NCBI GenBank assembly: GCA_964019335.1
Contig: OZ025748.1
Coordinates: forward strand, 248,001 to 312,000
Direction of reading: 5' to 3'
Length of the DNA stretch: 64,000 bases
From: Diplonema japonicum
Taxonomy: Eukaryota > Protista > Euglenozoa: Diplonemea
Shown: positions 18,187 to 51,910 of the stretch, in pieces
Layout: every line of letters begins with the position of its first letter
Numbering within the stretch: position 1 is the first letter of the stretch
Translations under genes and position numbers: made by a program
The notes under the pieces: generated by a model
Told to the model about the DNA's origin: nothing
The model's input: the letters and a program-made list of their open reading frames with translations, nothing else
Databases searched by the model: none

Positions 18187-18679
18187 CGCTCTTTTCTCTT
18201 CCTTTTCGTTTTTTTTTTTTTTTTTTTTTTTTTTTTCCTCTTCCCCTCCACAACCTCTTTGTGTTTTTTATTATTATTATTATTATTTTTATCTCACATT
18301 TTGTCTGCGCGCAACCCTCCGTCTGTCTAGCCACATTTCTGTCGTTTTAATAATCGATAACCACCAAGCCAAGTGCCGCATTTCAGGTGAAAAGTTGAAC
18401 CCTGACAAATGCGAGAGCACACATTCTTCAAAAAAAAAAAAATAAATAAATAAATAAATAAAATAAAATAAAAAAAGTAAATAAAATTTTAAAAAAAATA
18501 AAAACAAAGATCAAAAGGTTTGAACTGCCTTTCGATGATCTTCGCCCTACCAAGTCTCAGAAAAATAAAAAAAATAAAAAAAAAGAAAAAATGTTTTTTT
18601 TTTTTCGTTTTTATAATATAAAAAAAAAAAAAAAAAAAAAATAAATAAAAAAAAAAGGAGAGGGCGGGTGAGGTGTTAC

Positions 18680-19822: not shown

Positions 19823-19979
19823 AGGGGAAAAAAAAAAAAAAAAAAGGTTTCCGTGTGTATACAAAAAAAAAAAAAAAAAAAAAGAAAATGAAGAAAAAAA
19901 TTGTTATTTAGTCTTTCCCACTCCCTCCCACCCCCACCCCCTTTTCTGTTCAAAAATACTTCCCATCAAGCGACGAGAT

Positions 19980-22367: not shown

Positions 22368-22584
22368 AAAAGAAAAAAAAATAATAATAATAAAAGAAAA
22401 GAAAGAAAGAAAAAAAAAAGATTTTTTTTTTATTATCCTATGCTATAGAAAAGGCAAAAGAATTTTTTTTTATTATTATTGTCAAAATCCCCCCCCCCCC
22501 CCCCCATCCCCTCTGTATACTTTTTTTCCTTTTTTTTTTTCCCCCCTTCTTTCTGTCGATTTTTTTTTCTCTTTTTTTCTCGTA

Positions 22585-22618
<34 letters not shown>

Positions 22619-22655
22619 TAACAAAAAAAGGGGGAAAAAAGGCAAAAAAAAAAAA

Positions 22656-23627
22656 ATGCACGATAGGAAACGTGAGGAGCAGTCCGAAACGGAGAAGAGG
22701 AACACGGCAGCGAAGATCGCAGCTTACAAGAAGTTGTGCGAGCTGTGCATCGGGATGAGGAAGCAGAACCTCCACACGCTGGAAGCCTACAAAACGGTCG
22801 AGAAAATTCTGTTGATCAACCCCGAGTTCTACACCATGTGGAACTACAAAAAAGAAATCCTCAACGCGCTGATGAAAGGCGACCGAAAGCGGGTAATCTA
22901 CGGAAGCGGCGATGTAATCGAAGGCGTGGCAGAGACAGCGGAACAAATCAACGCACGCTGGTTCACATGCGAGCTCGCCTTCAACCAAAAAATCATTAAG
23001 GACCGCGATCATAAGTCATACTGCACGTGGCACCACCGGAGATATCTTGTGAAGAATATTCTGTGCGCAGATTTTTACAAAGACACCCTTCGCACCGAAA
23101 AAGCGCTTTGCGAAAAACTTCTATTGGTGGACGACCGGAATTTTCACTGCTGGGGATACAGGGCTTGGATCACAGAGAGGCTGCAAACGTTGGGTGAATT
23201 TTCTGAACAAACCGAACTCGATCACGCCAAGGTAAGACTTTCATCTAATTTCTCCAATTATTCTGCTTGGCATGCTAGGGGGAAGATCGTCCAAGCATCC
23301 CCTGCCCAGACGACAAAGGATTCCTTAGTGTCCGAGGATATTGCCCTAGCAGAGAACGCTTTTTACACTGAGCCGTCCGACCAGTCGGCATGGATCTACG
23401 GGTACTGGGCCCTGACTCTCAGCCAGGCATCACCCCCCGACACCCCTCTTGAGGCCTTCAAGGCTTACGCAACAGAGTTGCACGAGGATGATGAGTCTTG
23501 TAAGTGGCCCGCCCTCACCCTGCTGCGATACGAAACAGATCCAACAAAACGGGTAGAATTGATCGAAGGCCTTATTGAAACCGATCCTATGAGGGCTGGG
23601 TACTACAGGGATTTGTTGCAGGGTTGA
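22656..23627 (+). CDS. RABGGTA: Rab geranylgeranyltransferase (GGTase II) alpha subunit
   Basis: MHDRKR N-terminus; PPTA repeats NPEFYTMWNYKK, KSYCTWHHRR, RNFHCWGYR, NFSNYSAWHAR, YTEPSDQSAWIY; C-terminal DPMRAGYYRDL. Confidence 0.9.
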   Translation: MHDRKREEQSETEKRNTAAKIAAYKKLCELCIGMRKQNLHTLEAYKTVEKILLINPEFYTMWNYKKEILNALMKGDRKRVIYGSGDVIEGVAETAEQINARWFTCELAFNQKIIKDRDHKSYCTWHHRRYLVKNILCADFYKDTLRTEKALCEKLLLVDDRNFHCWGYRAWITERLQTLGEFSEQTELDHAKVRLSSNFSNYSAWHARGKIVQASPAQTTKDSLVSEDIALAENAFYTEPSDQSAWIYGYWALTLSQASPPDTPLEAFKAYATELHEDDESCKWPALTLLRYETDPTKRVELIEGLIETDPMRAGYYRDLLQG

Positions 23628-23728
23628 AAAAAAAAAAAATGAGGGAAAAAAAAGAAAAAAAAAAGAGGGGGGAAAAAAAAAGTGTGTTATTTGCAGGGAA
23701 GGGGGGGAATTTCTTTTTATTTTCCCCC

Positions 23729-23763
<35 letters not shown>

Positions 23764-23892
23764 CTTCTTCTTTTTCTTTCCTCCGGCTTCTCTTGCCTTT
23801 TTTTTTCCCCCATTTTTTTCCCCTTCTTTTTTATAGAAGTGTCAAAAAAAAAAAAAAAAGAGAGAGAAAGAACAACAAAAAAAAAAAAAAAA

Positions 23893-24816
23893 ATGAACAC
23901 CACGATGATGGACCCTGTTACATTCCAGCAGCAGATGGTGCAGCTTCAGGCAGCGGGGCTCCCACCCCAGACGATGCCTCTACAGCAGGGAGTGTGGGTG
24001 TGCCTGCCGCAGCAGGATGCGGTGGGGATGCAGAGGCTGATGATGACTCAGCACGGCCAACTCATTTCACCCATGATGACACAGGCGCAAGCACAGGCCG
24101 CTCAAGCACAGGATGTTGCTGCAAGGCTGAATGCTGGAATCTTCGCGGTGAACGAGTCCATCGGGGGCACGCAGCCTACAGGAGGCCAGCAACAGGTAGC
24201 AACACGAGCACCAGCAAGCGCACACCCCGCACCTGTGTCTATTCCTGTTTCTTCGTCTCCAGTTCGTGCTGGAAGCCCGGAACTTGTTTCAAAACCTGCT
24301 GGCAGGCCTGCAAGGGCATCTGTAAGGATTGAAGTCCCCCCCGCGTCGCCAAAAGCGGGAAGTGGGCTCCCCCCATTGGATGATTCTTCTGAAGAAGAAT
24401 CCCCCCAGGCAGGGAAGTCGAAGAAGAAGTCCCGAAAAAGCAGAAGGCGCAAGTTGGACACTGCCAGGTTCAAGACTGTCATGTGCAGGAACTTTTTGAA
24501 ATCGGGCTGTGCGTTTGGTAATGAGTGTGCCTTTGCGCACAGCAACGATGAGATTCGTGATGATGAGAGTAGTGCGTCTCCGGCCCCGTCCCCTGCCTCC
24601 ACTCCGACTGCCGTGTGTGGCAGGGCGGCCTCGGAAGGCTTCACCGGCAACTCATCACCGCTCGCCAAGAAGAACCTCAAGAAGACCCCCCCCAACAGAA
24701 AGGCCTCCATCATAGAGGACCCCAGTATGGTTCGCTCACACCGAGGCGCGCTTGACTGGCGGAGGGCTTCGGCGGCTCCTTTAATCGACCAGAAAAATGT
24801 TTGTTTTGGGGGAGGG

Positions 24817-24847
<31 letters not shown>

Positions 24848-24915
24848 AGGCGCAAGTTTTAGCATTAGCCGCAAATCTGCGTCGTGCATCGGCACCTGCT
24901 GCTCTTCATGTATGA
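23893..24915 (+). CDS. CCCH zinc-finger RNA-binding protein, 2 exons (23893-24798, 24850-24915)
   Basis: RFKTVMCRNFLKSGCAFGNECAFAH (C-x7-C-x5-C-x3-H); Gln-rich N-terminus; an in-frame 51-nt GT..CAG intron explains the poly-Lys. Confidence 0.88.
24799..24849 (+). other. 51-nt poly(A)-bodied intron
   Basis: GTTTGT...GGG-(A)30-CAG; in frame and stop-free. Confidence 0.7.
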
Positions 24916-30374: not shown

Positions 30375-33158
30375 ATGCATGACTTTCTTACGCTTCGGGA
30401 ATGCTTGGCAGCTCTAGAAGAGGAAGACAATCTTTACGAAGCTGAAAAACTAAGAAAACACGATCACTGGCGCCAGGCACTAGAGGTAAGACGAAGGCTA
30501 CGACGACTGGACAACACCAAGGTACGAGAAAGACTGGACAAAATATGGGCTGAAATGGAAGAGGTGGAACTGGCGGGGATACAAGCCGAGCAAGCCTTCG
30601 GGTACTGGGAAAGACTGACACACATCGGACTCGATTGGCTAATTAGGGATGCAGCGTCTCGTCTATGCACTCAAATCCCCGAGAACAAATGGCACACTCC
30701 AATATCGTTCGGACTGACAATTTTATGCCTACATGATTCAAAAGGGACCTCTATAACATACTCTGACTGGTGCAAGGGCATCCGGGTCTGTGGAAACCTT
30801 GAACTCTCCGCTCCGCACCCTCTTGATTCTTGCGACGAGAGGTCGCCTTTCTGCGGACACACAACCACCTCCACAGTAACCGGGGACTGCGTCAACCTCA
30901 CGGTAGGTTCAAGCGAACTATCAATAAAAAACAGCACCCTCTTCTCGAATCTTGACGTATCTCGACATCCTATTCCACAATATCACAAAATACCAGTAGG
31001 AGACGAGGGGTTGTTTTTGTACTGTGTGTTGCAAGTCGATGTTAAGTGGTGGCGGGGGTGGAGGAAACACTGTAAAACAACCTCGTTGCAGCCACGTGAG
31101 CAACATGAAAATGCCTTGATGTGGCACGCAGAGGTCACAACCCATCAAACCTCCGAGCTCACCCTCATGCACCTCCATGATTACAATGCCATCGATGTTA
31201 TGCACAACGCACCGATACGACCTTATTTACCAGGGGTCCTGAGAGTTTCCGGGGCTGCGAAAACTCCCAATGTGTCGGAGCAAACTAATCTAAGAACTCT
31301 CCGTCCTGCAGTTGCTATGTCGACAAAAACTAGTATGGCGTATATTTCAGGCGGGCTCCTACCTGGTTCGGAAGGAAACCCTAGCAATACCGTGACTGAG
31401 GTGGATCTTGGGAACTACACCACCCGACAGGTTGCCAACATGCCCTTCCCCCTCGAGTCGCACACAATGGTATCATACAATGGAAGGGTTTACGTGTATG
31501 GCGGTTATGGAAAGCTTTCTTGCGAACCAACCGCGAATCTTCTCGAAGCTGGTCCTTGCGATAAGGATCCACCGTATATTATACCGGAAGATCCTTCCGA
31601 GCAGCCTGATGAGGGGTCCTCCGGTGAGGGGCATTCATTTGGAAGCAGGGCCTCGTCGATTATGTTACCGCGGTCTCGGCGGAGAAGTATGTCAGGTAGA
31701 CGGCGATCCAGCATGATAGGGAGAAGGGTCCTCGACTCGTACTCCAAGCTGTCCAGACGTCTGTCAAGAAGAAAGAAGAGCTTCTCGCGGTACTCACGTG
31801 CGTCGTCATCCGCTACTTTGGAGACCGTATCGGATGTCAAATCGACAACAAAACCGCCCGCTAAGTACGGGCTGTACTGCAGTGTGTCGGAATGGATGGC
31901 GGAGAAATGGGTCACCCTTCCGACCACACGTGACAAGGTGTCTGGCATCCCAGTACATCGAAGTGGTCACACCGCCACCATGCGAGGCCATTACATGCTC
32001 GTCCTCGGCGGTTGGGGGATGCTCCCTGACAAGCTTGTCATGAAGCGCACAAACACCATGTTGTCCCTGTCATTGAAGTCCGGTAGATGGCGTCGGGTTG
32101 CTTACGACGAAGACGTTGAATCCCCTCATCCAAGGTCGGACCACACTGCTGTCATGTATGGTGAGGTGATGTACGTGTACGGAGGGGTGGGGTGCGCGCA
32201 CACACAAAACAGCGAGTCTGAAACCACCGATGATGACACTCCATGGGGCAACATGGTGAAGAGTCACCACGACATGGGCACCTGCTCGTCCACTCTCGAC
32301 GAGTTCTGGCTCTTCGATCCAATGGGCTTCTGGAGCAGGCTTACAAGCAGAACCGCAACACACCCCCCTCCACTCTCATCACACAGTGCTTGTGTCTACC
32401 GAGACTCTATGATACTTGTTGGCGGGCCTGGAATGCCGCACATGTACCAATGGTCCTTCCCAACAGACACATGGAGGTCCATACACGTTCCTAAGGTGAT
32501 CCCTTCGTCGGTGTTGGAACGCTGTGGGCATGTAATGTTGCCTGTCGGGCAGGACACTGGGGTTCTATTGATAGGCGGGGTTGGGGTGGGCAACGGGAAG
32601 GTGCCGTCCGGGATGTCTACGAGCTCTTTCGAGTTCAAACCGCATGAGACGGAAAGCTTGCGGCCTGAAGACATGTTGCCAGCGGCATTGCTTCTTTTAA
32701 AAGAAGGTGCCCCTCTCGATTTCGACTGGAAGGTGTTAAATGAGATGTACCCTGTAGGGCTGTGTTGGAAGGAGAACGGGATGAACAGTTCTCCCAAACA
32801 GCCGGTGCTATCATTGGAGAAACCATCACCGCCGAAGGCGGTGGCTATCATGGACACACAGGTGCAGAGCAAGGTGCAAATCAAACAAAACCAGGTTCAA
32901 AACTTAACCCGCCCGAGTCACAGGAGCGAGGGTCAGCTGCCTCGAACTTCAAGCAAATTGCACCCAGGAAAGTACCGTGCGCGGTCGCAGGCACAGTCGG
33001 TGTTTGATCGGCTCACCGTAGACCAGTACACTTATAATCCTGTGGAGAAAATAAGCAGTCCGAGAAGAAAAAGTCGGGGCAATAAATACGAGGCTTCTTC
33101 AATGTTGCGCAGAAAATTGCTGGAGCGGTTGAATACCTATTCAGGGGGTGTCGACTAG
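30375..33158 (+). CDS. Kelch-repeat beta-propeller protein
   Basis: Six Kelch-like blades: MAYISGG, SHTMV..VYVYGG, RSGHTAT..LVLGG, RSDHTAV..MYVYGG, SSHSAC..ILVGG, RCGHVM..LLIGG; Arg/Ser-rich insert between blades 2 and 3. Confidence 0.88.
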   Translation: MHDFLTLRECLAALEEEDNLYEAEKLRKHDHWRQALEVRRRLRRLDNTKVRERLDKIWAEMEEVELAGIQAEQAFGYWERLTHIGLDWLIRDAASRLCTQIPENKWHTPISFGLTILCLHDSKGTSITYSDWCKGIRVCGNLELSAPHPLDSCDERSPFCGHTTTSTVTGDCVNLTVGSSELSIKNSTLFSNLDVSRHPIPQYHKIPVGDEGLFLYCVLQVDVKWWRGWRKHCKTTSLQPREQHENALMWHAEVTTHQTSELTLMHLHDYNAIDVMHNAPIRPYLPGVLRVSGAAKTPNVSEQTNLRTLRPAVAMSTKTSMAYISGGLLPGSEGNPSNTVTEVDLGNYTTRQVANMPFPLESHTMVSYNGRVYVYGGYGKLSCEPTANLLEAGPCDKDPPYIIPEDPSEQPDEGSSGEGHSFGSRASSIMLPRSRRRSMSGRRRSSMIGRRVLDSYSKLSRRLSRRKKSFSRYSRASSSATLETVSDVKSTTKPPAKYGLYCSVSEWMAEKWVTLPTTRDKVSGIPVHRSGHTATMRGHYMLVLGGWGMLPDKLVMKRTNTMLSLSLKSGRWRRVAYDEDVESPHPRSDHTAVMYGEVMYVYGGVGCAHTQNSESETTDDDTPWGNMVKSHHDMGTCSSTLDEFWLFDPMGFWSRLTSRTATHPPPLSSHSACVYRDSMILVGGPGMPHMYQWSFPTDTWRSIHVPKVIPSSVLERCGHVMLPVGQDTGVLLIGGVGVGNGKVPSGMSTSSFEFKPHETESLRPEDMLPAALLLLKEGAPLDFDWKVLNEMYPVGLCWKENGMNSSPKQPVLSLEKPSPPKAVAIMDTQVQSKVQIKQNQVQNLTRPSHRSEGQLPRTSSKLHPGKYRARSQAQSVFDRLTVDQYTYNPVEKISSPRRKSRGNKYEASSMLRRKLLERLNTYSGGVD

Positions 33159-33484
33159 GCTTTTTTTTAAAAAAAAAATCTTCATTTACACAATTTTTCC
33201 CCCCCCCCAGTAAATCTTTTTTCTCGTTAAAAAAAAAAAACTACAACACTTGTTATTGTTGCAGCGTTATGCGTTACAAAAAAAATATAAATTTCCCCCT
33301 TCTTTTTTTTTTTCAGTATTTGTTTTTTTTTAAGCCCCCCCCAAGTCACATCAATGATTGAATGATACTTGTCATCAATCATTCAAGTAATGAATAAGAA
33401 AACAAAAAAGGGGGAAGGGAGTGAAGAAGAGGTGGGCCGCTAACCCAACGAGCCTTCTGGCCGTAAAGTAGGGGCCGGTACCAC

Positions 33485-36400
33485 ATGCAATCTTCTAATG
33501 GCAGCAACTGCTACGTGGAATGGAGAGCGGGGGACCTGGACGTGATGCGTGTCGACGAGGAGAAAACCCGGCTCAGGAAGAAACAGCTGGAGGAGAAACA
33601 ACTAGCGAAGGTACCAACTACAACAAAAAAAGAAGAAGGGAAAAAAAAAAAAAAAAAAAAAAGGAACAACTGTTGAAAGGGAAATCAGAGTCATTCCGCG
33701 CGCAGTTCAAGAATCAGATTGCCAACATGGGTGAGGAAGTATGATGAGATATCTTTACAAAGAAAAAAAAAAAAAAAAAAAAAAAAAACCAGGACCCGCA
33801 AGTCTGGTCAAGCAACCTCAGCATAGTATGCGGGGATGTGGCTACTTTAGTGGAGCGACGCCGCAGCGTGACTGTGCTGGTGTACGGTCATGAGAAGTCG
33901 GGGAAGAGCCGCACTGCGGACAAAGTAGTAGCTTCAACACTGCACTTGCTGCAGCAGGTAATCGACTCAGCAGCAAACCACCACGAGAGAAAGCTGTCCA
34001 ACCTCGAGAAGGAAAAACGAAAAAAAGAACTGGAAGAAGAGCTGCGGCTGCAACAGGAACGAGAGGATGCAGAAGCTGCGAAGGAAGCGCAGATCGCCGC
34101 CGGAACCGCAGTGGCTGCCGCTCGCGGAATGAACTCCGCGAGGAAATCAAAAGTAGTCCTTCCTCCGCCTACTCCGGGCGATACAGCCAAGAAGTCCTTG
34201 AGCCCTACTGCAAGCAGCAAACGCGGCTCAGGCAAAAGAGTGAGCCTAATGAAACGGCAGTCTATCTCCGCAGAAGTTTCTAACAAGATGCACGGCATCC
34301 TCCCCCCACCCGTCCTTGACAAAATCGACTTGAGTAAAGGGTTGGGTTCACGTACAACGACGCCGAACAATTTCACAGCGGAGCCGGCATTCGTCCCCTT
34401 CGAGACCCTCCCCGAGTCCGTGAAGCTTCCCCCCATCACACATGACGCCACACCGAAATCGCAACAGCGCGCCTCGAAAAGACTCACCCGCACCAAAGTG
34501 GACGGGGATGACACCGCGAGAAAACGAAGAAGCTCCATAGGAATGACCAGCTTAAGGTACTTTTGTTTGTTTTTTTTTTTTTTATTATTATAACACCCAC
34601 CCCAGCCGGAACGGTTTGAAGGGCGTCATCACAGGGCTGAGCTTTGACAGGGTGAGCACGCACGTGAAGCTCCCCCCGCTTGTGAAGCTGCCACAGTGGG
34701 TATGGTGCTTTTTCTTTACATTTGTTTCCAACCCTCTTAGGTACAATGCTCTGAAATCGAGTTCTGGGTGCGCAGCAGGGAGAAGGACCACCAGATGACG
34801 GTGGTGTGGGTGGGGGATGGGAACGCAGCGTCGCTGATCAAAATCAGTCTGAACACTGACGAGAACATGGAGCACTGCGAAGGGGTGCTGCTCTTCATGT
34901 TGCGGGACCAGTACAGCAGTACGTACATCGCCACCTGCGGAACAGAAGACCTCTGCAACGACAAGTGGCACCACGTGAGCTTCAGAATCGTGAACCCAGC
35001 AGAAAACATCATCACACTCACTGTTGACAACAGAACGGTGCGAATGAGTATCAAAACAGCGGAGAATCCAAAAGACTTCGGCGACTGGACACAAAACGGT
35101 CTCGTTGGCGGTGAATACGTAGGTCGGTCCAAGGTCGACCACTTCTTAAAAGGTGAAATTCTTGACTTGAAGTTCTGGTCTTTCGAGGGCACCGACGACG
35201 GCCCCGCTACCTTGCAGGCTCACTACTCCTTCACGGACTCAGACGCCACCACCGGCACGCTCACAGACCTCACAGGAGGACAAGGCGCGGAGGTTTTCTT
35301 CCCCGAATGGGGCATGATAGAGTTCCCCGAAACATGTCTGCACTTCAATGGTGCTTTCACGCATATCAACACGGGGACGCTGGGCGACTTTGGCCAGCTC
35401 ATGGGTTCTTGCCGTGTGGAATTTTGGCTGCGATCAGGCTGTACAGACCGGTCAATGGCCGTGCTCAGAGTCACAGACACATCACATAAACACGCTGTAA
35501 TCGGTGTAGAGCTGAATAAAGGAGCAGACGGGAACTTCCGCCGCGGTTGCACCTGCTTCACTATCAGAGACACGCAAGGGAAGGAGCTCGTGGCAGTGCA
35601 GACGATAACTGATCTCTGTGACGGGAAGTGGCACCAGGTGACGTGGGACGTGGTGTGCTCCGAAAACGTAATGAGCGTCAAGATAGACAAGTTCGACGTG
35701 TCCCTGGACTACAGCAAAGCGGAGCAGCCCAGCAGCTTCTGTTCCCTCACGCAGTGGGTGCCAATAGGCGCACACAACCACAGGGGCACGCTTCAGGACC
35801 ACTTTGAAGGTTATCTCAAAGAAGTGAAAATATGCGGCGGTGGCGTGGGCAGCATCCAACAGGTGGTGGCACAGTGGCAGCTGGACGAAGGGGTCGGCGC
35901 CACCGTCGTTATGGACAAGACGGGGAACGGGAACAACGGTATCATCTACGACAGAAATATGAAGAAGAAATCCAGCAGGTGGTACTCCGTGAAGCAACCT
36001 GAAGGGCTCGTCCTGGCAGTACCGATGCTGGGGTCCCCGCGCGCCAACATTAATCTGGAACACAGCTGCAACGAAGTCCAAATATCAGCAGTGCACATCA
36101 TCCCCACCGCAAGCGAGCCGGGTCTTTACACCGAGACGATCATAGATCTCATTGACGGTGGAAACGACTTGAAGCTGGAAGACAGCACCGCGAACCCATA
36201 CGGGAGGGGGGTCCATCCTCAGAAGCTCATGAAGTACGTCGCAAAGCACACTTTCAAAGCAGTGCAGTCTTGCGCGCATGCCCAACAGCTGGTAGAGCAA
36301 GCCAACAAACACACAGACCCAAAAAGCCTGGGAACGCGAATCTTCACATTGCTGATCGGCGAGGGACGGCTCACGGTCGTGGACCTGGCGAGCTTCTCAC

Positions 36401-38871
36401 AGAAAACACGCAGCGTGTGGGATTCAACGCTCGAGGATTGGGTGGAACCCAAGACTCTGATTTCTCAAGATGACAAGGCCGTCAATTTCTGCAACAAAAA
36501 GGCAAGCGCGACAGAGCGCACCATCATGAAATTCGGCAAATCGCCCGCGCTGTTCAGAAGGTCCAAGGCAGGCATGGAAACGGTCGACTTCTCGGAGACG
36601 TTGACGACGCAACTACTGCAGTACTCCCTCTTGCGTGACATGGAGTCCTTCCTGACCTTTGTACACATGTTGAAGGACACCCCGACCGCAGCGGAACAGA
36701 AGTGCACCGAGTGGTTCGTCAAAGGATTTTGCGGCGCAACGCAGTCTTTTGCGTGTGGTGTGGTTCAGAAAGCTGTGAGGGTGTTCCTGGCGAAGAAAAA
36801 GATCAGCGCCATCAAGCAGTCCAAGGAGGAGAACGAGGAAGGTCGAAGGCGCATCATAAAACTGCAAGAGGCGCACCCCGAACTGCTCTGCGTGAGAGAC
36901 AGCAAGATCGTGTTGCTTGTGGACGTGACGAGACTGCAGGACGAGAGGATGCCCCACTTACACAGCGCAGGGCAGAGGTGTAAGGAGCTAGAGGACAACT
37001 ATGCAAGGCAAGGGTGGGAAGTGCGTGTCCTGGCCAAGGCCGACGCTTCCCTCCGGAGCATCATTGACAACGTGGGCTTGCTGCAAGGCTACCTGGGAAC
37101 CTCCTTCATCATGGTGCACTACGTAGGCTACGCGGCTTACAGCGCGCCCTACCACAAGTGGATGGAAAGAAGTGAGCTACACGAGTTGACGAAAACCGCA
37201 GAAGAAGCAGCACGAGAAGAAGTCATGCAGACAGAGGCCCGCACACGCACTGCCATGCAGCACGGAATGGCCGACGAAGAAGAGGAGACACGAGCAGCCG
37301 AAGCCATTCGTATTTCAGAAGACAAGGAACTCCGTAAAGAAATGCGGCGGAAGGAATTGGAAGCGAAGATGGAGGCCAAGCGGGCCTCCCAGCAGAAGAG
37401 CAGCGGCTGGGTCATGTCGACGAAGGTGGAACCGAAACACTCCGAGAAGGCGAAGTCACAACAGCAGCAAGACAACAAATGGGAGATCGAGGAGGCTAGG
37501 AGGATGAAGACACCCCTGCCTTTTGAACCCTCGCCCACACCAATAATGGAACCCCTGCCTGACGAGGTTCAGTGGTCGCCCGAGGAGCATCAGTTCCTCA
37601 CAGCCTATGACACACCTGTAGAGTACTCCAGCAGCAACACTCTCCCTTTCAGCGCATTACGAGAGTGTCTTCTGAAAGAAGAACTGGGCAAACATGTCAT
37701 CATTGCGGCAGAGTGCTACCCAGCCCCGAATACAACATCCCCTGCTTGGGCGTGGCTCGGCGCTTCTACAGGAGAAGTGCAGGAGTGGACGGGTAAAGGC
37801 GCACCCGAATATCTAGGGTATTATTTAAACAAAGCACTATGTGGGGGAGGGGCTTTGGATGTGACCGGGTTGTGCAAGTCTGAGGAGAGAAAGAAGAGGG
37901 AAGAAGATGTTCGCAAACTACACGAAAGTGAGGTGGAAGCCGCGCTGAGCGCCGGGAGGCCTGTCCCCATCGACAGCTTTTCAAAGGAGGGTGTAGCATG
38001 GCCGGGGTTCGCAAAGTATATCTCAAGCGGAATGCGAAAGAGGGACATCACAAGTAGCAACACGGTGGAGGGCAGCACCTACGTAGGCGACATGCTGATC
38101 GCAGACAAAAACATGAGAACGCTGCGATCGATTCCGCAGAGACGGCAGGCGAAGGAGAAACAGGCGGCGGCCATAGCAACAGCATACATCAGCTTGAATA
38201 CTACTTTGCCGGAGCTTTCAAACGACGAAATACCCGACATGATAGCTGACAGGATGAATGAGGTCCAAGGTATAAGGCAGCGTGTGGCACACAGACCAGT
38301 GCATAGAAAACTCGTAATCGTCTTGCGGTTCAACGGTGACATCGTCAAAGCAGGGCTTCCATGGTGCAGCACGCTAGACTGGGAGGACTACGTCGCTGAG
38401 CTCACAGGAGGAAAGCAGAAGATGTCATACATAGTCCAATGTGAGGACAAAGGCTCGTTTTCGCTGCACATCACCCTCCACGAGGACGAACATGCTATAG
38501 TGACAAGCATCGCAACGAAGTTTCGTGCAAAGCTCGGCCTGGAGTTTCGCCCTGCCCAGCTCAGCAACGAGGTTGTCTTGACCCCCTGTGCTGCTGGGCT
38601 TCTGTACTGCACAGGGATCGCCTGTTCCTTGTACTCCATCATGGCTGTGAAAAAAGCGTTTTTATCAGGAAGCCAGTCAGATGAAGAGTTCCGATTGGTG
38701 ATTTTCGACATTGCTTCGCAAGATGAGCATGTTCACATGAACGACGAGCGCAAGACTATTCTCCAGAAGCGTAAGCAGGAGGTGGCAAGGCTGCGCGAGG
38801 AGAACATGACCGAGGACGAGAAAAGAAAGCGACAGGTAGAGGAAACACGGAAAAGCTTACGCTCCATGTGA
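33485..38871 (+). CDS. Multidomain protein (~1729 aa): split degenerate kinesin motor, 2x LamG, IQ-like motif, caspase-like domain, coiled coils
   Basis: Exons 33485-33610, 33664-33738, 33793-34556, 34606-34699, 34741-38871 join in frame through four GT..AG introns. LamG motifs EIEFWVRS, LCNDKWHHV, LCDGKWHQV, FEGYLKEVKI, WQLDEGVG..DKTGNGNNG. P-loop YGHEKSGKS. Confidence 0.8.
33611..33663 (+). other. 53-nt poly(A)-bodied intron
   Basis: AAG|GTACC...(A)22-G; needed to join two reading frames. Confidence 0.75.
33739..33792 (+). other. 54-nt poly(A)-bodied intron
   Basis: GAA|GTATGA...(A)26-CCAG; contains in-frame stops, and removal joins the frames. Confidence 0.78.
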
Positions 38872-39029
38872 AAAAAAAAAAAAAAGAAGAAGAAAAAAAA
38901 AGATTTTTTTTGTTTTGTTTTCTTCTTTCTCATCTGTTTATATTACCTCTCTTTATACCTCTCTTTTTCTTTTTCTTCTTTTTATAAACTATCCAAACAA
39001 ACCCCCCCCCCCCCCCCCCCCCCAGGGGC

Positions 39030-39932
39030 ATGGACCTACCTGTAGATGTCGTGAAGCACATTCTGCAGTACCTGCCCCTAATCGAAATAGGGAGGGCTGG
39101 GGGCGTTGCTAAAGTCTGGTTTCGGGCGTCTCGTGAGCCGGGTTTTTGGAAGGTTCTTTCGCTCAGGAACAAGTGGGTGAACCGTGACAAAAGAGTTCTG
39201 TTCGATTACAAGCGGTACTACGGGGTGGCGAGGCTGAGGGCAGCAGAGGTGGTCGAACTGAAACCATCTTTGAAGAGCAAGGCCGATGCCACACTGCTAA
39301 AGTCCATCACAGGGGCTTGCCCCAACGTCACCGAGCTCTGCATCACTGGCTGCATACACGTTTCGGATTCGGTGTTGGTGTCTTTCCTATCATCAACATC
39401 AAACTTATCCACGTTAAAAGCGGGAAGTTGCTGGAAAACAGCCGATCTAAAGATGCATCACTTCTCTTCTACAACTCTCCTTCGCGCCTTGCCAGGCGTA
39501 CCGCTGCTCTCAAGGTTGGACATCTCAGGTTGGGGAATCACTGATGTGGGCGTCCAGACCATCGTCAACAATTGTAAAGGGCTGAGGGCGCTATCGATTG
39601 AAGGCTGTGTTCTTCTCACGCCCTGGGCTTTCACTATCCTCTCGGATTCTGTCTTTTTGTCCTTCTTAGATATTTCGCGTGTATTCCTAACCTCGGAGCA
39701 CTGGGTGTCTCTCAGCACCTCCCCGCCCCCCCGTCTCTCCACCTTGCTGGCAGCTCACTGCGTGGCACACAAACCATCGTTCCTTAAACTGTCCTCGCTC
39801 GGTGTGACTATTCACATTCCCAATGCGACGAGCAATCGCACAATGCTCCAGAAGATAGCCGGCAAGAACCCACTGATCTCAACCTGCCCCCAGCAGGCCG
39901 AGGCTGCCCTTGACGCCTGTTTCCAGTATTAA
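39030..39932 (+). CDS. F-box / leucine-rich-repeat protein
   Basis: F-box LPVDVVKHILQYLP...VAKVW; RNI-like LRRs (CPNVTELCITGC, LSRLDISGWGITD, CKGLRALSIEGC). Confidence 0.88.
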   Translation: MDLPVDVVKHILQYLPLIEIGRAGGVAKVWFRASREPGFWKVLSLRNKWVNRDKRVLFDYKRYYGVARLRAAEVVELKPSLKSKADATLLKSITGACPNVTELCITGCIHVSDSVLVSFLSSTSNLSTLKAGSCWKTADLKMHHFSSTTLLRALPGVPLLSRLDISGWGITDVGVQTIVNNCKGLRALSIEGCVLLTPWAFTILSDSVFLSFLDISRVFLTSEHWVSLSTSPPPRLSTLLAAHCVAHKPSFLKLSSLGVTIHIPNATSNRTMLQKIAGKNPLISTCPQQAEAALDACFQY

Positions 39933-44031: not shown

Positions 44032-44329
44032 TTACTATTTTTCTTTTCCACCTGTAATCAAGTAAATGGTGCTTGTGCAGGGTGCCCCCACCGGCTTCCT
44101 TTAAATCATCGAATTTCCATTTTCTTCTCCTTTCTCTCTTTGATTCCTGTTTGAAATACTTCTAACAAGTAAAACGTGGCGGCTGTGGCACAGCTTCCGT
44201 CCGATTTCATTAATTAAAAAAACAAGATTGCTTCCTTTTGTTACATGTTTGTGTCCCTTTTTTTTCCTCTTTGTGTTTCCCGCCGTATTTACCACACTCA
44301 GGATCCTTGGGGGGAATCTTCAAAAGAAA

Positions 44330-47300
44330 ATGAATCGAGTAGCTGTGTCCATGGTGGCCATTATGGCAACCTTGCCGCCCACCCAAGCGGCCAGTCCGGG
44401 GAACTGTCCCAACGTGCAGTTTAGTTCAAGTGGAGCAGACACCTTGACATGTGATTATTTGAACAAATGCCCGAACTGCAACATGAACTGCAATGCGAAC
44501 CAGAAATGCACCACAAAGTGTACCGCTGACAGGGCATGCGAGAGAGCGACTCTGAACTGCCCTGACGGGAAGGATTGTGTTGTGAAGTGCGAATGGGACA
44601 ACGCATGCACCGATATGACAGTGAACTGCCCGACAACGGGAAAATGTTTGATCACCTGCGCCAACCAATGGGCATGCAAGGGTATGAAAATCCGGCAACG
44701 CGGCGGCGGGGGCCAGCTGGACCTGAAGTGCAACGGACACAACTCTTGCACCAACGCCAACGTTGTGTGCCCGACAAGCGGGGCGAAGTGCACAATAGGT
44801 TGCCCCGAGCAGAACTCGTGCAGCACCATGACTGTGACAGCAGCGGGGACGTCCCCCCTCGACATGGATTGCAAAAGCACCCGTGCGTGCTTCAAGAGCA
44901 CCATCACCTGCCCCGCCTCGGCCGACTGCAACGTACAGTGTGAAAGTCCTGAGAACTCCTGCCTCCAAATGAAGGTCAAGCCAGAGAAGAAGCAGCCTTC
45001 AAACACCCCGCAGACAGGCACCGTCACCGTTACCTGCAAGAACAACAACGACTGCCGCTTCGCGAAGCTCGACTGCGGCTACGCGGCCAGCTGCAAGATG
45101 ACGTGCACCGGGAACTACGCCTGCGAGGAGGTCGAGATGAAGTGCACCAACTCCGGGACATGCATCCAGAGATGCTCGTATCACAAGTCTTGCAGCAGAG
45201 TAAAGGTGTTGCATTCCTATGGCGCTGCCACCGGTGGTGAGACACGCCTTCTATGCGAGACTGAATCGGCATGCGAAACATCTCAACTGACCTGCAAGGC
45301 CAACAGGGAATGCAACAGAAAGTGCCGTGGCCACCGTGGATGCTTCGATTCTACTTTCGACTGTTCCCAGTCTGGGGTCGAACGGTGCTCGCAGGACTGC
45401 CGCGGGGGCGAATGGGTCTGCCAGACGACCATGAAGTGCCCCTCCGAACCTTACAAATGCGAGTCGACCTGTGTCGGCGACAACGCCTGCAAGGGGTCCC
45501 TCACAGGGCACGCCTACCCGACGTACTGCCAGCAAACAGGGTCCAAACCTCCTTGTGACAACGGCTACCAGAATGCAGCTGATAAGACCACGGAGGCACC
45601 CACCCCGTCACCGGGCACTGATGCCCCGCCCACAGCGGTGCCTACCACACCACAACCTGCTACATCTTCCCCTGTCACCTCCTCTGTTCCCACGCCAGCG
45701 CCAGCAATTTCCGTTCCTGCAACAGGTGTGCCTATAACAAATGCTCCCCTGACCGGAGTTCCAGCCACCAGCGTGCCAGAAACAGCTTTTCCTGCCTCAC
45801 AACCACCTGTCACCTTTGGCAAACCCTACTTTTGTTCCTGTGACACTATCACCAACAGATGCACCGGCCACGAACCCTCCGATGACCTTCCAGCCTGCTG
45901 TGGGTGGCACAGCGACACCGAAGACGTTTGCTCCTGTCACAGGTGCAGCGGACACAAGTGCACCTGACACAGATGCTGCAGTTACGCCCGCTCCGCCTTC
46001 TGGAAAGGCGCTGACGGGGAGTGCGAAGGACAAGGTGAACGGGGCGACGTCTGTGTCTTCAGGAACTGCGTTGCTGTCCGGGGCAGGTGCCGGTGCGATA
46101 GCGAGAGTTGCTGTCTTGAAGGACCTGGGCTGCGAGGTGGAGGACGTGGACATCGACGAGGACGAGACTCTGGACTGGGAGTTCCACCCTACAGGGCTGG
46201 GCGTCGGGAACTCGCCACGGAAGTACCTGTTCGGTGCGGTTGTGATGAACCCTGTGCTCATCCTGGGGATCCTCACCTTGCTGGCGGGCCTCGCCGCTTG
46301 CCTAAAATTCTGCAAGGGGTTGCCGACCTGGGGGGCGGCGCTTGGCGCTGTGAAGGCTCCCGGTTTGATCTTCATCCCGTTCCTGTTCCTGGTGCAGGGG
46401 ACGTCTTTGATCTCGGCACGTGTGGCGTTCTTCCCCGGGAACGGGTTGGGAACCTTCGAGGTCGGGCTGGCGTGGGTCGTGCTTATCATATGCATCACGT
46501 CTCCGGGGGTGCTGTACGCAGGGGTGCTGCGGAGGGTGCACACGGAGGCCTGCATGATCCCCGACGCAAGGCTGCACCCCGACGACCCACTGGTGAAGAG
46601 GCTGTGTGCGACAAGCGGTGCACCGAAGGTAAATGCCTACACAGGTGTCACGGCGGTGTTGTACAAGCTGGCCTTCGGGGACAGGATCTGGGTGTCGAGC
46701 GACGCGGGGAGCTTCTTCGCAGACATGTATGGAGGCGCCTTCGACTCGTTCAAGCCCGGGGCGGTGGTGTGGTTCCCCTGTCTGGAGATCATGGTGATGG
46801 TCATCCTGTCGATGCTGGCGGCATGGAGGCCGACGAAGGGGATGGCGTGCGATACGAGGAATATCTTCATCTGCTGCTTGTTCGCAGGGTTCTTCTTCAC
46901 CATCGTTATAAAACGCCCGTACCTGTCGGTGTTCGACAACTTTGTGGCGGTCCTGCTGTCCTTCTGCATGTTCCTGTCGGTTCTGCTGATGACGACGGGG
47001 CTGTGGATGCAGCTGCATTCGGAGTCCTTCCCGTTCCTGTCCTCTGCTTACATCCTGCTCTCCACCGCTTACATTGTCCTCTTCAAGGCGGTCTGGGATA
47101 TGGTCGTCTACTTCATTGACATCTACATAGGCCGCCGCCAGTCGGCAAGAACTCTTGCAAGGGAATCTGCTAACTCATCGAACCACAGCATACCGGAGAT
47201 GAGCATGGAGATTATGATTTACGTGACACTCCCTAACAGGGTGCCTGATCAGATTGAGATATTGGACCCTATATCCGATACGGTGAGCCTTCATACCAGC

Positions 47301-47354
47301 AGTTCGTATACCTCCATTGGTTTCAACGAGAAGAATGGTCAGTTCAGGATTTGA
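44330..47354 (+). CDS. Cys-rich surface protein with Thr/Pro stalk and multi-TM C-terminus; one +1 frameshift at ~45815-45817
   Basis: Signal peptide MNRVAVSMVAIMATL; repeated C-x5-C-x6-C units; TxAP stalk continues across the frame change (PPVT/LANPTFVPVT); about seven hydrophobic helices in the second frame. Confidence 0.8.
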
Positions 47355-47636
47355 AGAGGGGGTAACAACAGTTTTTTTTTCTTCCTTCCCCCTTCAGTGG
47401 GGGGAGTTGCATATGAAAACACGAAAAGAAAAAGCAGAATACAAAAAAAAAAGAGGGGGGAAAGAAGAGTAAGGAGGAAAAGAAATTGGAAAGCCATCTC
47501 TTTTTTTTTGAAAACTTCCCTAAATTTCTTGCTTTGTCCCCCCCCCCCCCCTTTATTTCATCCCCAGAATATTCGCTCGCCCTTCTCCCCCTTCTTTTTT
47601 TCTCAGGCGTCCTGCCACGTAGGTACCCTTAAAAAC

Positions 47637-49793
47637 TTTTTTGTTTTACTGCTGCCACACCCTTTATTGAAGGATTTCCTTAGTAGTCAAATGAGGACGA
47701 TGTCTGTTGTGATGCTTGCCCTGCTTGCGGGGTCCGCGCAGGGTCTGTCTGTGGAGTACGTGAACGCGAACGCGAGGACGATGTTCAAGGCCTTCAAGAC
47801 GGACTACAGCAAGGTGTACACCTCTGTTGTGGAGGAGGAGAGGAGGTTCGCGATCTTCTCGGAGAACCTGATGAAGGCGGCGAGGTACGAGATGGAGCAG
47901 ACGCACGGGGCCACCTTCGGGGTGAACGCCTTCTCCGACCTCTCGGCCGAGGAGTTCAAGGGGCGCCACAACCTGAGGGTCCCGAAGAAGACTGGTCCTC
48001 CTGCTGCCCCTGTTTCTGTGACGGGTCCCACTGAGGTTGATTGGAGGACGAAGGGTGCTGTTACCCATGTGAAGAACCAGGCTCAGTGTGGAAGGTGTTT
48101 AAAAAAACGAATAAATAAATAAATAAATAAAAATAAACAAAAAAAAATAATTCTTTTTTTTTCATTTTTTTTTTCACAGCTGCTGGGCCTTCTCTACAAC
48201 TGGAGGGATCGAGGGTCAGTGGTTCCTTTCAGGTCAGACCCTGACCTCGCTGTCTGAACAGGAGCTTGTGTCGTGCGACAAGAACGACGACGGGTGCAAC
48301 GGGGGTCTCATGGACAACGCCTTCAAGTGGCTTCTGTCTGCGCACAGCGGTCAGGTGGTGACGGAGGCCTCGTACCCTTACACCTCGGGTGGCGGGAACA
48401 GCGGGTCGTGCCAAGAGGTGTCTGGGAAGGCGGTGGGGGCCACCATAAAGGGCTACAAGGACATCGCGCACGACGAGACCTCGATGGCGACCTTCGTCGG
48501 TGTCAGCGGTCCCCTCTCCATCGCTGTGGACGCGCAGAAGTGGCAGACCTACACCGGTGGGGTCCTCTCCAACTGCTGCGGGATCTTCGGGTGCCAGCTG
48601 GACCACGGCGTCCTCATCGTCGGCTACGCCCCCGAGTACTGGATCATCAAGAACTCCTGGGGTCCCAGCTGGGGCGAGAACGGCTACATCCGCGTCAAGA
48701 GGGGCGACAACGAGTGCGGCCTCAACGAGTCCCCTTGCTCCTCGGAGATCTGAGATGGGTGAACTTGAAAGAGTGGTTTTTTAAGAGAAAACAAAAATTG
48801 TTAAACTCTTAATTCAATCCGTGTACTCCTTTCCCCCCCTACCTACTATTTTTTCTTTTCCATTTTCTTTTTTTTTTTCTCTTTCTCTCTTTGATCTTTC
48901 CTGTTTGAAATGCTTCTAACAAGTAAAACGTGGTGGCTGCAGCACAGCTTCCGTCCGAATCTCATTAATTTAAAAACAAGAGTGCTTCCTTTGTTACATG
49001 TTTGTGTCCCTTTTTTTCCTCTTTATTTATTCGTTTTCCTTGTGTTCCCCGCTGTATCTACCACACACAGGACCAGGCTGGGCTTGAGCTGCACACCGCA
49101 CGCATCAAGGTCACGACGCAGAACGCAGAAGAAGCTACAGCGTCAACAGACCCGCAAACCCGATGTGCACATCCAACAGAAATGGTCCAGCAAGATGCTG
49201 GGAAGAAGTCTTTTTTAAAAGTTGTTTTACCACCACCCCCCCCGCAGGAGCCACTAAGGACCTGGCTCTTCCATAGCCTTGTCCACAGAGCAAATGCGGA
49301 GACCGTGGTCGGGAGAAGTACGGACACTAGTAGGAGCCATTGAAGGGTGCCTCTCGCCTGAAGAGGTCAGCACCTGGAGGAGTCGCTCTGAAAAGGAAAC
49401 GCGTTTCCTTAAGTATCTGAAAAATAAGGAATCGGAAACGTTTCCCCGTTTCTTGCCAGCATAGCCTGGGGGGGGGGGGGGGGGTGATTCGGTTCACAAC
49501 CAAAAAAAAGGAAAACATAAAGCTGTCGTTGCTACCAAGCGGGTGCTGCATGGCAGGTCTGGGAATCCTTTCTAAGGTTCCTGTATGACACAGCAATGCA
49601 ACGAGGTAACCCTACTTTGGTTTAAAATGTCTTGACCGGGCTGCGAGAATTTTAAAAAAAAAAAAAAAAAAAAAAAGCAAAAAAAAAAAACCACGTAACA
49701 AAAAAATAACAAAATTCAAAAAAAAATCAACCCATCCAACAACACGAAAACCCAGATACACACCCCCCCATCCCAAATGAGTAGTGTAGAACT
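47637..49793 (+). repeat. ~2.2-kb direct repeat, copy 2
   Basis: Near-identical to 41835-44031; runs into the intact galM start. Confidence 0.95.
47691..48753 (+). CDS. Cathepsin L-like cysteine peptidase (C1A), copy 2; exons 47691-48094, 48180-48753
   Basis: Same protein and intron as copy 1; no differences seen by eye. Confidence 0.95.
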
Positions 49794-51001
49794 GAAGGAA
49801 GTGGTGCTGCAGCTGAACGGAAACGAAGAGAACGCCAGCGAAATAATCCTAGAAAACGAAAATGGAATGCGTGCCGTTATACTCTCATACGGTGCGGCAC
49901 TATGCGAGGTTCAGGTGGAGAACGTCGCGGGGAAGAAGCTGGATGTCACGCTCGGCTTCGACAAGCCTGAAGACTACACCAGACAGGACAACCCCTTCTT
50001 CGGCTCCACCGTAGGCAGGGTCGCGGGCAGAATCCAAAACGGAAGATTCCGCATCCCGGGCCGATCAGAAGAGGTCATTCTATCCCCCTGCGACGCTCCA
50101 TTCATCAACAAGACAGCAAACCTCCACGGAGGGCCCGACGGCTTCAACAAACGAAACTGGACAGTCTCAGGACACTCAGCAGACAATGGGTCCGCAGCTG
50201 TCGCACTGGCACTAACAAGCCCGAACCTTGACCAAGGCTTCCCTGGCCAGCTGACCGCTACTGTAACATACACTCTAACACCTGAAAACGATTTGGAAAT
50301 TTGCTTCGATGCGAATTCCACAGAAGACACCGTTTGCAGCATGACAAACCACGCTTATTGGAACCTTGCAGGGCACGATAAACCAGAAAGCATGAAGGAC
50401 CATGAAGTTAAAATTTTCAGCACGAAATATCTGCCCACCAAAGCGGGCATCTACACAGGTGAAGTCCGTGATGTACTGAAGGGCTCCGTGCACGATCTGA
50501 CAGAGGGGAAACGCTTTGAAGAAGCGGCGCAAGGAATGTTGAAGGAAGACCCCGAGTTCCCCCACGGTGATGCGTACATAGCACAACACACTGATAAGGT
50601 TTGCCGCCCCGTTGCTTCCCTCTTCAGCCCTTCTTCTGGTATTCAAATGACCGTCAGCACCACGGAGCCTGTTATACAAACGTACTATGCTTCTATCCTT
50701 GATGTTAAGGATGGGAAGGGCAAGATGGACTACCCGCCTTACTCGGCTATGTGTATCGAGCCGCAGGGCTATGCGGACTCCGTGAGCGACCCACTTCCAT
50801 CCGACCCTGTGCGTGCGGCCTTTTGCGAAAAGTTCGGACATACTTTGCTGTTGAAGAAAGGGGAGGCGTACAAGCACAAAACGGTCTGGCCTTTTCTTTT
50901 TATTTTTTTAATTTTTTTATTTTTTTTTATGGAGAGGGAGGGAAAAAAAAACTTTTTGTCAGGTATACTCGTTTGCTATAGTCGAACCAAGCAGTCCCTG
51001 A
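49777..51001 (+). CDS. GALM: Aldose 1-epimerase (galactose mutarotase); exons 49777-50883, 50963-51001
   Basis: FFGSTVGRVAGRI, NLHGGPDGF, DQGFPG, MTNHAYWNL, MCIEPQ; removing a 79-nt intron restores the typical end YKHKT|VYSF. Confidence 0.92.
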
Positions 51002-51225
51002 CTGAAATAAAAAATAAAAAAGAGGGGGGGGGGGAATAGTGTGGGAGGGAAGACAAAAAAGAAGAGAAAAAGAATACGGTGGGGGGGGGGGGGGGGGGGG
51101 TACTCTCTAACACGTAAGAACAAAAAGGGACGTTATTATTTTCTTTTTTGCTTTTGTTTTGCTCGCCACGGTTGTTACATTTTTCCCTCCTCCCCTTCCA
51201 CATTCAAGAAGAAAAAAAAAAAGAA

Positions 51226-51257
<32 letters not shown>

Positions 51258-51328
51258 AAAAAAAACAGGTATCTAAACCCTTCCCCTTCTCCTGTCTCCC
51301 TTTCTTTCAACAAAAAACAAAAACAAAA

Positions 51329-51910
51329 ATGGGAGCCGACATGTCAACGATGATCATCACGTGCAACAAGAAGGCATACCTCGATGCACCTGCTTCGTGG
51401 GCCTACGCGCAGATGAGCGACGCGCGGGTGTGGTTCGCTGCCTACTCGGAGCACGACGACAGCCCTGTGGTGAACCTGCACGGCCCGACCATCAAAGCAG
51501 GGTGTGAGTTCGATGCGGTGAAGAAGGTGAAGGTTCAGCAGCAGAAGACGAGCGGGAACTACAGAACAACGTGGATGGAGATGAGGGATGTTTCGGTGGA
51601 GCTGAAGCTGGAAGAGGCAACACCGGACTCCTACGTGAAGTTCTGGGGGAAGGAAACCTGGGTCGACTCGAACAGCAAGGTGGGCGACCCTTATGTTCTT
51701 GAGTTCAGGATCAACCCCTTGTCCCCAAGCACGTGCGAAGTCGAGGCCACTATGACATTTTCCAACTCCAGTGCCTGCCTCATCCCGTGCGTCCTGCTCT
51801 GCGGGAGTTGCATCAAAAACGCCGCTCAGGGGAAGATGGGCGGGGCTCAGATCAAATTGAAGAAGATCCTTGACGGTAAGATGAAAAAGGGAGGTCAGGG
51901 CATGCGCTAG
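51329..51910 (+). CDS. SRPBCC/START-like hypothetical protein, copy 2
   Basis: Paralog of 40061-40642 with 3 amino-acid differences (D>N, I>T, S>N). Confidence 0.75.
   Translation: MGADMSTMIITCNKKAYLDAPASWAYAQMSDARVWFAAYSEHDDSPVVNLHGPTIKAGCEFDAVKKVKVQQQKTSGNYRTTWMEMRDVSVELKLEEATPDSYVKFWGKETWVDSNSKVGDPYVLEFRINPLSPSTCEVEATMTFSNSSACLIPCVLLCGSCIKNAAQGKMGGAQIKLKKILDGKMKKGGQGMR

Follow-up and report, generated by a model that had tools for sequence, protein, structure and literature searches.

The window analysed here, a stretch of 64,000 nucleotides (nt) from the diplonemid Diplonema japonicum (assembly GCA_964019335.1, contig OZ025748.1, positions 248,001 to 312,000 of the forward strand), contains at 33485-38871, on the plus strand, a gene for a protein built on a kinesin motor domain into which a large folded segment has been inserted. 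Our reading, to which we give a probability of about 0.85, is that this 1729-residue cytosolic protein has lost the chemistry of the motor on which it is built and is a static scaffold. Its family, conserved and previously unannotated, is a variant within the kinesin superfamily whose arrangement of domains inside a domain has no known precedent; it is not a new kind of system. The analysis establishes the folds of the domains, their order, the location of the insert to within a loop, and the losses among the motor motifs.

As read from the sequence, the coding part of the gene amounts to 5190 nt in five exons, whose phases close in frame to 1729 codons plus TGA, and the four introns that separate them are of the GT-AG type (Table 1). 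These introns are tiny (53, 54, 49, and 41 nt), they all begin with GTAC or GTAT and end with AG, and their GC content is 19-37% vs ~54% in the exons. An earlier note on this DNA, made from the sequence alone, had proposed a five-exon gene for a protein of ~1729 residues, and we arrived at identical exons. All four junctions are crossed collinearly by three orthologues in translated alignments to the window DNA: P0156 from D. papillatum (KAJ9451672.1, DIPPA_04325), P0010 from ENA, and P0011, a Trinity transcript of Artemidia motanka. Exons 1, 2, and 3 tile the N-termini of the orthologues without gap or overlap.

The claim that the P-loop and LamG parts belong to one gene, and not to separate mRNAs, is borne out by a paralogue in the same genome (L008:1715-7957, contig C44). 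It encodes within a single uninterrupted open reading frame (ORF) the complete architecture in this order: P-loop piece, linker, two LamG domains, C-terminal motor piece (C-piece), IQ-like helix, and caspase-like domain. This ORF and the Trinity transcript protein EP01064_Diplonema_japonicum_P012362 are 100% identical in the 1300 residues that were compared. The match between an intron-less ORF and a transcript protein removes the separate-mRNA scenario for the family and, taken with the collinearity of the orthologues, makes it very unlikely for the window gene.

The kinesin origin of the head is visible when families of sequences are compared. Pfam searches with every piece of the window and paralogue genes returned LamG domains and generic sub-threshold P-loop matches, with no match to kinesin, IQ, or caspase profiles. 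Similarly, a hidden Markov model (HMM) of 20 kinesin sequences found nothing significant in the C-piece with HMMER, and the reverse search with an HMM of the C-piece retrieved no kinesin. Because HMMER was negative in both directions, a comparison between profiles was required. Homologues were collected with HMMER using residues 1-1200 of the paralogue, which yielded 197 proteins at E ≤0.001, ~45 of them carrying the region that follows the LamG domains; the window exons were searched one by one. The resulting family profiles of the N-terminal motor piece (N-piece, 31 rows) and of the C-piece (51 rows) were compared with a profile of 20 bona fide kinesin motors of D. japonicum (L010-L029). The N-piece matched over columns 14-116 (94 columns, hhalign probability 95.7%, E 9.1e-9), in an alignment that takes in the strands upstream of the P-loop, and the C-piece over columns 105-330 of 331 (205 columns, 95.2%, E 2.8e-8). 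The pieces match in collinear order and jointly cover almost the entire kinesin motor, and the reversed and column-shuffled controls fail, with probabilities ≤0.5% (E 0.13-0.87). Thus, the kinesin motor in two ordered pieces that the earlier note had described is recovered, with the structural matches below pointing the same way. The jackhmmer run of the family covers residues 9-80 of exon 3, and in P0008, the Euglena gracilis member, the N-piece scores above the Pfam Kinesin cut-off (36.6 bits vs 29.3). When the family profile was run back on the genome, its N-terminal part matched true kinesin loci and its caspase-like part a Peptidase_C14 locus.

The test of the whole fold used the intron-less paralogue, of which residues 1-1200 were modelled by AlphaFold2 from a family alignment of 42 rows, with a mean confidence score (predicted local distance difference test, pLDDT) of 79.5. 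Foldseek searches with this model returned laminin and neurexin LG pairs first and kinesin motors next (E ~1e-6). The kinesin matches align 282-305 of 308-347 target residues with a root-mean-square deviation of 3.2-4.0 Å, and among the whole-head structural matches listed, 50 out of 50 are kinesins, with ~90% of the kinesin motor aligned. The aligned range extends from residue 1 to residue 1037-1041 of the model and from ~6 to 342 of the kinesin chain. As it covers both pieces of the model and nearly the whole kinesin chain, the two motor pieces, lying ~690 residues apart, form one complete kinesin core in the paralogue model. The central eight-stranded sheet flanked by helices that characterises the kinesin motor fold is found in this modelled reassembly. 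The C-terminal 980 residues of the window protein itself (35929-38868) were also modelled (mean pLDDT 82.3), and the Foldseek matches listed for them were all kinesins (best E 9e-5).

The alignments and the model also locate the insert. The alignment of the N-piece proceeds through the P-loop and along a continuous helix spanning both halves of alpha2, with a gap of 9 columns at kinesin loop 5, and that of the window C-piece begins at kinesin-1 residue 117, just ahead of beta4. In the paralogue model, alpha2 (106-120) extends into a long helix (122-174) pointing out of the core; the chain comes back by way of a short helix (791-802), which leads into beta4 (809-820). From these alignment limits and helices, the ~690-residue insert is placed by the model at the junction between alpha2 and beta4, near loop 6, a position inside alpha2 being possible. 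The insert is made of a coiled-coil/disordered stalk and of two laminin-G beta-sandwiches. Pfam Laminin_G_2 exceeds its cut-off in the window, with two stretches, and the paralogue model matches the LG4-5 pairs of laminin alpha1 at E 4.5e-17 over ~450 columns, so that the two LamG domains noticed earlier do lie inside the motor fold. The likeness to the LG pairs of laminins and neurexins is that of tandem LamG beta-sandwiches. Those pairs are extracellular, whereas the window protein has no signal peptide and carries its pair within a cytoskeletal motor fold. Intracellular domains of the ConA-like type exist, e.g., in BEACH proteins.

The motifs of the motor cycle have met different fates. The window protein, its orthologue P0010, and most family members have an intact Walker A; some members read G-Q-P-R-S-G-K-S-Y-A-M, very near the kinesin GQTGSGKTYTM. 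Switch I (NxxSSRSH) is absent: most members keep its final His, in place of which the window has Thr. The family consensus of switch II is DLxG without the Glu, a form retained in many members and exemplified by D-L-K-G-F in the orthologue P0001. Having DLAS and no switch I His, the window copy has degenerated further than its paralogues. No member examined has the SSR of switch I or the switch II Glu, residues that in kinesins build the salt bridge orienting the attacking water. All three observations of the earlier note on these motifs (Walker A kept, switch I missing, switch II degenerate) therefore stand. Further downstream, some members have P-W-D-D-S-L-V-T-R-L-L where kinesins have PYRDSKLTRLL, and a net-charge comparison of alpha4-alpha5, the region that binds microtubules, did not discriminate. 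With switch I missing and the Gly and Glu of switch II gone, i.e., the salt-bridge partners and the Gly that senses the gamma-phosphate, we infer that the head is incapable of the kinesin ATPase cycle.

Two further elements follow the head. The first is a long helix on which the family has the consensus IQKxxR. The suggestion of an IQ-like helix after the motor is upheld in this form, and falls short in another: Pfam IQ has no match in the window, and in the homologues it stays below its cut-off of 20.3 bits (P0036, 18.2 bits; P0014, E 0.025; P0001, E 0.72). The second is the caspase-like domain, also anticipated in the earlier note. The window's own model shows the caspase/hemoglobinase fold, and the region matches the profile of ten metacaspases of the same genome with an hhalign probability of 94.3% (E 1.1e-7). 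Pfam Peptidase_C14 has no match in the window gene, nor at this locus in the genome-wide scan. The domain is split by an insert of ~140 residues (residues 414-555 of the window model), coiled-coil or disordered. The SGHG of the metacaspases is set by hhalign on G-Y-A in the window, and the family has Tyr, Phe, Leu, Arg, or other residues at this place. A Cys (37714-37716) occurs directly after the strand where caspases bear the catalytic one, in a second half whose profile alignment is weak (hhalign probability 4.9%), and its position is occupied in the family by Cys, Thr, Leu, or Ala. Because the catalytic His is replaced by Tyr, the domain is presumably unable to cleave. The least degenerate member is P0008 of Euglena gracilis (EP00667_P000956), the one with an N-piece that passes Pfam Kinesin. 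It is the sole member that keeps H-G at the catalytic His, and its Peptidase_C14 score is 19.8 bits (cut-off 21.4). This state points to an ancestral protein whose head was more canonical and whose protease may have been active. At the C-terminus (38161-38865), the fold searches with the window model, whose lists were filled by kinesin and caspase matches, assigned no fold.

If both the motor cycle and the caspase are dead, the protein is most likely a static cytoskeletal scaffold or adaptor, and one can sketch how it might work. Exons 1-3 provide the N-terminal third of the motor, up to the P-loop and alpha2, and the other two thirds, beta4 to alpha6, come after the insert. In the folded protein, both pieces would pack as one kinesin core, with the LamG pair hanging from the alpha2/beta4 junction. 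The head may bind nucleotide, since Walker A is kept, without going through the kinesin ATPase cycle, and could serve as an anchor or as a nucleotide-stabilised platform. The LamG pair might bind a ligand or a partner and display a binding surface, the IQ helix could recruit a calmodulin-like light chain, and the pseudo-caspase with its coiled coils may be involved in oligomerisation or in partner binding. These binding roles of the head, LamG pair, IQ helix, and pseudo-caspase are all putative. A more elaborate mechanism, which we consider unlikely, is a ligand-gated nucleotide switch: binding of a partner or glycan to the LamG domains would be relayed through alpha2 to the nucleotide pocket and would control the attachment of the head to the microtubules of the euglenozoan feeding apparatus or pellicle, the IQ-bound light chain and the pseudo-caspase acting as output. 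Such a protein, if this is true, would be a regulated cytoskeletal anchor of a new kind, made from a motor.

A number of observations weigh against the scaffold reading or against parts of it. A six-frame scan of the 62.5-Mb genome with Pfam Kinesin (PF00225) gave no match at the window locus up to E 10, and the N-piece of the window's own subfamily is not significant against kinesins when taken alone (hhalign probability 2.3%, E 0.021), so that the kinesin assignment depends on the wider family. The reassembly of the two halves was modelled on the paralogue and is carried over to the window protein. The loss of the ATPase cycle is deduced from motifs. Walker A is itself lost in several members, including the D. 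papillatum orthologue P0156, where it is degenerate (G-P-E-K-P-E-K-A). Hence, nucleotide binding is not conserved even within the window's subfamily and may be of little matter to the family. The Arg of the PYRDSK motif that contacts the microtubule is replaced by Asp, Glu, or another residue in the family, and binding of microtubules by the head is doubtful. Finally, the assembled contigs of four public runs, which look like DNA, contain none of the splice joints and give no evidence on the junctions either way. Those of three runs (X5-X7) span 33801-38865 with introns 3 and 4 retained and break at homopolymer runs around introns 1 and 2, and those of the fourth (X1) are short fragments within exon 5.

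The alternative that concerns function most directly is that the protein is an active, non-canonical kinesin ATPase, in which other residues stand in for the switches and the LamG insert acts through alpha2 as a gate on nucleotide turnover or on microtubule binding. The intact Walker A of the window, P0010, and most members would fit with this, as would the DLxG of many members, the His that survives at the end of switch I, the high confidence with which the core is predicted, and the known allosteric role of alpha2 and its flanking loops in kinesin-5. Yet, the SSR and the Glu are missing in every member examined, the window copy has lost in addition the Gly of switch II and the His of switch I, and Walker A has disappeared from several members and from the D. 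papillatum orthologue, which makes this alternative improbable. It is very unlikely that the copy in the window is decaying into a pseudogene, or that it is an artefact of assembly whose apparent introns are homopolymer frameshifts. The introns are indeed rich in homopolymers, the contigs of the public runs break at these runs, one word-based protein search found no protein identical to the window copy, and this copy is more degenerate than its paralogues. But exon 5 is open for 1376 codons, the four gaps are of GT-AG type and restore the frame exactly where the orthologues continue, and three runs from two studies (P3 and P4) have the same sequence over 33801-38865 with zero differences, although some may be the source sample. 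Furthermore, the identity to orthologues is 30-34% over the C-terminal 980 residues, and 34% with P0001 over all of exon 5, which implies selection.

Two other origins of the head were considered and rejected. The P-loop piece might not be kinesin at all, and could be a STAND/AAA-type NTPase module or part of a separate upstream gene, given that it has sub-threshold Pfam matches to ATPase_2 (E 1.8e-4), AAA_16, and nSTAND6 and that the gene models P0001 and P0004 begin downstream of it. These matches, none of which reaches its cut-off, cover barely more than Walker A, whereas the family N-piece aligns with kinesin over 94 columns and P0008 passes Pfam Kinesin; as for a separate gene, the single-ORF paralogue and its transcript join both parts. 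We regard this origin, which these data contradict, as highly improbable. We give even less credence to a core derived from myosin. It would account for an IQ-like helix placed after the head and for a switch II of the DLxGF type, since the D-L-K-G-F of P0001 resembles the myosin DIxGFE. Against it, the listed whole-head matches are all kinesins, no myosin appears in any structural match list, and the ~125 residues from switch II to the IQ-like motif fit a kinesin and are too few for the relay and converter of a myosin.

The scaffold reading can be set against several known proteins that share one or another of its features. KCBP has a kinesin head directly followed by a calmodulin-binding helix, and resembles the window protein in the placement of a helix right after the head; the IQ-like motif of the latter is a weak sequence match, and its binding of calmodulin is putative. 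KCBP differs from it in being an active minus-end motor with another calmodulin-binding helix. Insertions between helix alpha2 and strand beta4 are not unique to this family: Plasmodium kinesin-5 reportedly has a large loop-6 insert in its motor domain, and in MKLP2 (KIF20A, a kinesin-6) the 99 residues inserted in loop 6 make up a subdomain, which projects from the motor core and points away from the microtubule (PMC5602324). In these two cases the insert is of ~100 residues and largely disordered, and all ATPase motifs are kept, whereas the insert of the window protein has ~690 residues with two folded LamG domains, its switches are degenerate, and the Pfam kinesin profile is blind to its locus. 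The closest precedent within the group is KinesinWW (DIPPA_09231), a degenerate diplonemid kinesin located at the feeding apparatus (cytopharynx) (PMC13615690). Like the window protein, it is a kinesin-like protein of diplonemids and prokinetoplastids, without functional motor motifs and fused to a protein-interaction domain (PMC13615690). KinesinWW differs in having a WW domain and in having lost the P-loop that the window protein retains as an intact Walker A; neither a LamG insert nor an IQ motif or caspase fold is described for KinesinWW. Compared with the pseudo-caspases and paracaspases of clan CD, such as the protease-like domain of c-FLIP, MALT1, and the N-terminal domain of Raptor, the caspase-like domain of the window protein is distinguished by its fusion behind a kinesin-derived head and by its ~140-residue coiled-coil/disordered split, and no death-fold or Ig domains were seen with it.

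The same domain order was found elsewhere in Euglenozoa, as the earlier note had proposed to search for. Members occur in the diplonemids D. japonicum, D. papillatum, Flectonema, Artemidia, Namystynia, and Lacrimia and, beyond them, in Euglena gracilis and in the prokinetoplastids Apiculatamorpha and Papus. The D. papillatum entries in GenBank are labelled "hypothetical protein", the others having transcript labels or no name; the D. papillatum orthologues include DIPPA_18763 besides DIPPA_04325. Our literature searches, which covered the architecture, degenerate kinesins, and the D. papillatum locus tags, found no published description of this architecture. A word-based search combined with a kinetoplastid/euglenid alignment returned no trypanosomatid homologue; given its limited sensitivity, this does not demonstrate absence. 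In the D. japonicum genome, the family profile detects at least five paralogues, of which four besides the window gene lie at C22:660634-663291 (minus strand), C44:30461-33382 (plus), C6:92535-95048 (minus), and C32:148172-150700 (plus). The C44 copy is intron-less over the full architecture and has an extra C-terminal helical-repeat extension.

Some side observations concern the genome and the surroundings of the gene. The scan of the 62.5-Mb genome with PF00225 gave at least 128 kinesin matches, mostly in long uninterrupted ORFs, a repertoire that is very large given the genome size. Long runs of A, T, and C occur in the introns and intergenic DNA (33160-33400, 33612-33800, 34570-34590, and 38870-38960), where the X5-X7 contigs break, and they are likely hot spots for length errors in assemblies. 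The neighbours on the plus strand encode a Kelch-repeat beta-propeller protein (30375-33158, 927 residues) and an F-box/leucine-rich-repeat protein (39030-39932, 300 residues), two types of protein that are typical substrate adaptors of ubiquitin ligases. Elsewhere in the window, runs of adjacent ORFs on the same strand and in different frames (18668-24915, 44228-48122, and 49777-52794) suggest further multi-exon genes with similarly tiny introns.

Table 1. Parts of the split-kinesin gene and of its product, in window coordinates.
Feature	Position	Strand	Remarks
Exon 1	33485..33610	+	ATG, 42 codons; N-terminal segment, no kinesin similarity detectable on its own; tiles onto orthologues P0010 and P0156
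Intron 1	33611..33663	+	53 nt, GTACCA...AG, A-rich; junction backed by collinear orthologues
Exon 2	33664..33738	+	25 codons; counterpart of the kinesin beta2 region
Intron 2	33739..33792	+	54 nt, GTATGA...AG, with stop codons and a poly-A run
Exon 3	33793..34556	+	kinesin N-piece at ~33793-34030 (alpha1, beta3, P-loop, alpha2), then coiled-coil/low-complexity linker
Walker A / P-loop	33886..33909	+	G-H-E-K-S-G-K-S; GxxxxGK[ST] intact
Intron 3	34557..34605	+	49 nt, GTACTT...AG, T-rich; transcript-derived Artemidia orthologue P0011 collinear across the junction
Exon 4	34606..34699	+	phase 2, 31 codons; LamG domain 1 begins
LamG domain 1	34606..35190 (approximate)	+	broken by intron 4; Laminin_G_3 match in orthologue P0001; alignments
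Intron 4	34700..34740	+	41 nt, GTATGG...AG
Exon 5	34741..38871	+	1376 codons plus TGA
LamG domain 2	35320..35850 (approximate)	+	Pfam Laminin_G_2, E 9.1e-10, 39.5 bits (cut-off 22.9)
Kinesin C-piece	36040..36741	+	strands beta4 to beta8, helices alpha3 to alpha6; beta4-like strand at ~36076-36111
Degenerate switch II	36382..36399	+	D-L-A-S-F-S for DLAGSE; Gly and Glu lost
IQ-like motif	36760..36798	+	on a ~60-residue helix after alpha6 (residues 254-315 of the window model)
Caspase-like domain, N-terminal part	36886..37137	+	Tyr at the position of the catalytic His (37129-37131)
Coiled-coil/disordered insert in caspase-like domain	37168..37593	+	helices 414-480 and 507-527; low pLDDT at 478-509 and 529-542
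Caspase-like domain, C-terminal part	37594..38118	+	structural alignments span model residues 305-730
C-terminal alpha/beta domain and two terminal helices	38161..38865	+	alpha/beta to ~38718; ~235 residues, mostly confident prediction (block pLDDT 72-91)

Kinesin motor domains are, to our knowledge, among the most constrained folds of eukaryotes, and the inserts we know of in them are short loops. An insert of ~690 residues, made of a complete folded domain pair and a stalk and kept across diplonemids, a euglenid, and prokinetoplastids, means that the kinesin fold is far more tolerant than was thought, and the family illustrates the conversion of a motor into a scaffold. As standard annotation misses this family, the inventories of kinesins in Euglenozoa are likely to be incomplete. 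Diplonemids rank among the most abundant heterotrophs of the sea, and the dissection of their microtubule-based feeding apparatus is just beginning; in Paradiplonema papillatum, this family offers concrete candidates to tag and localise.

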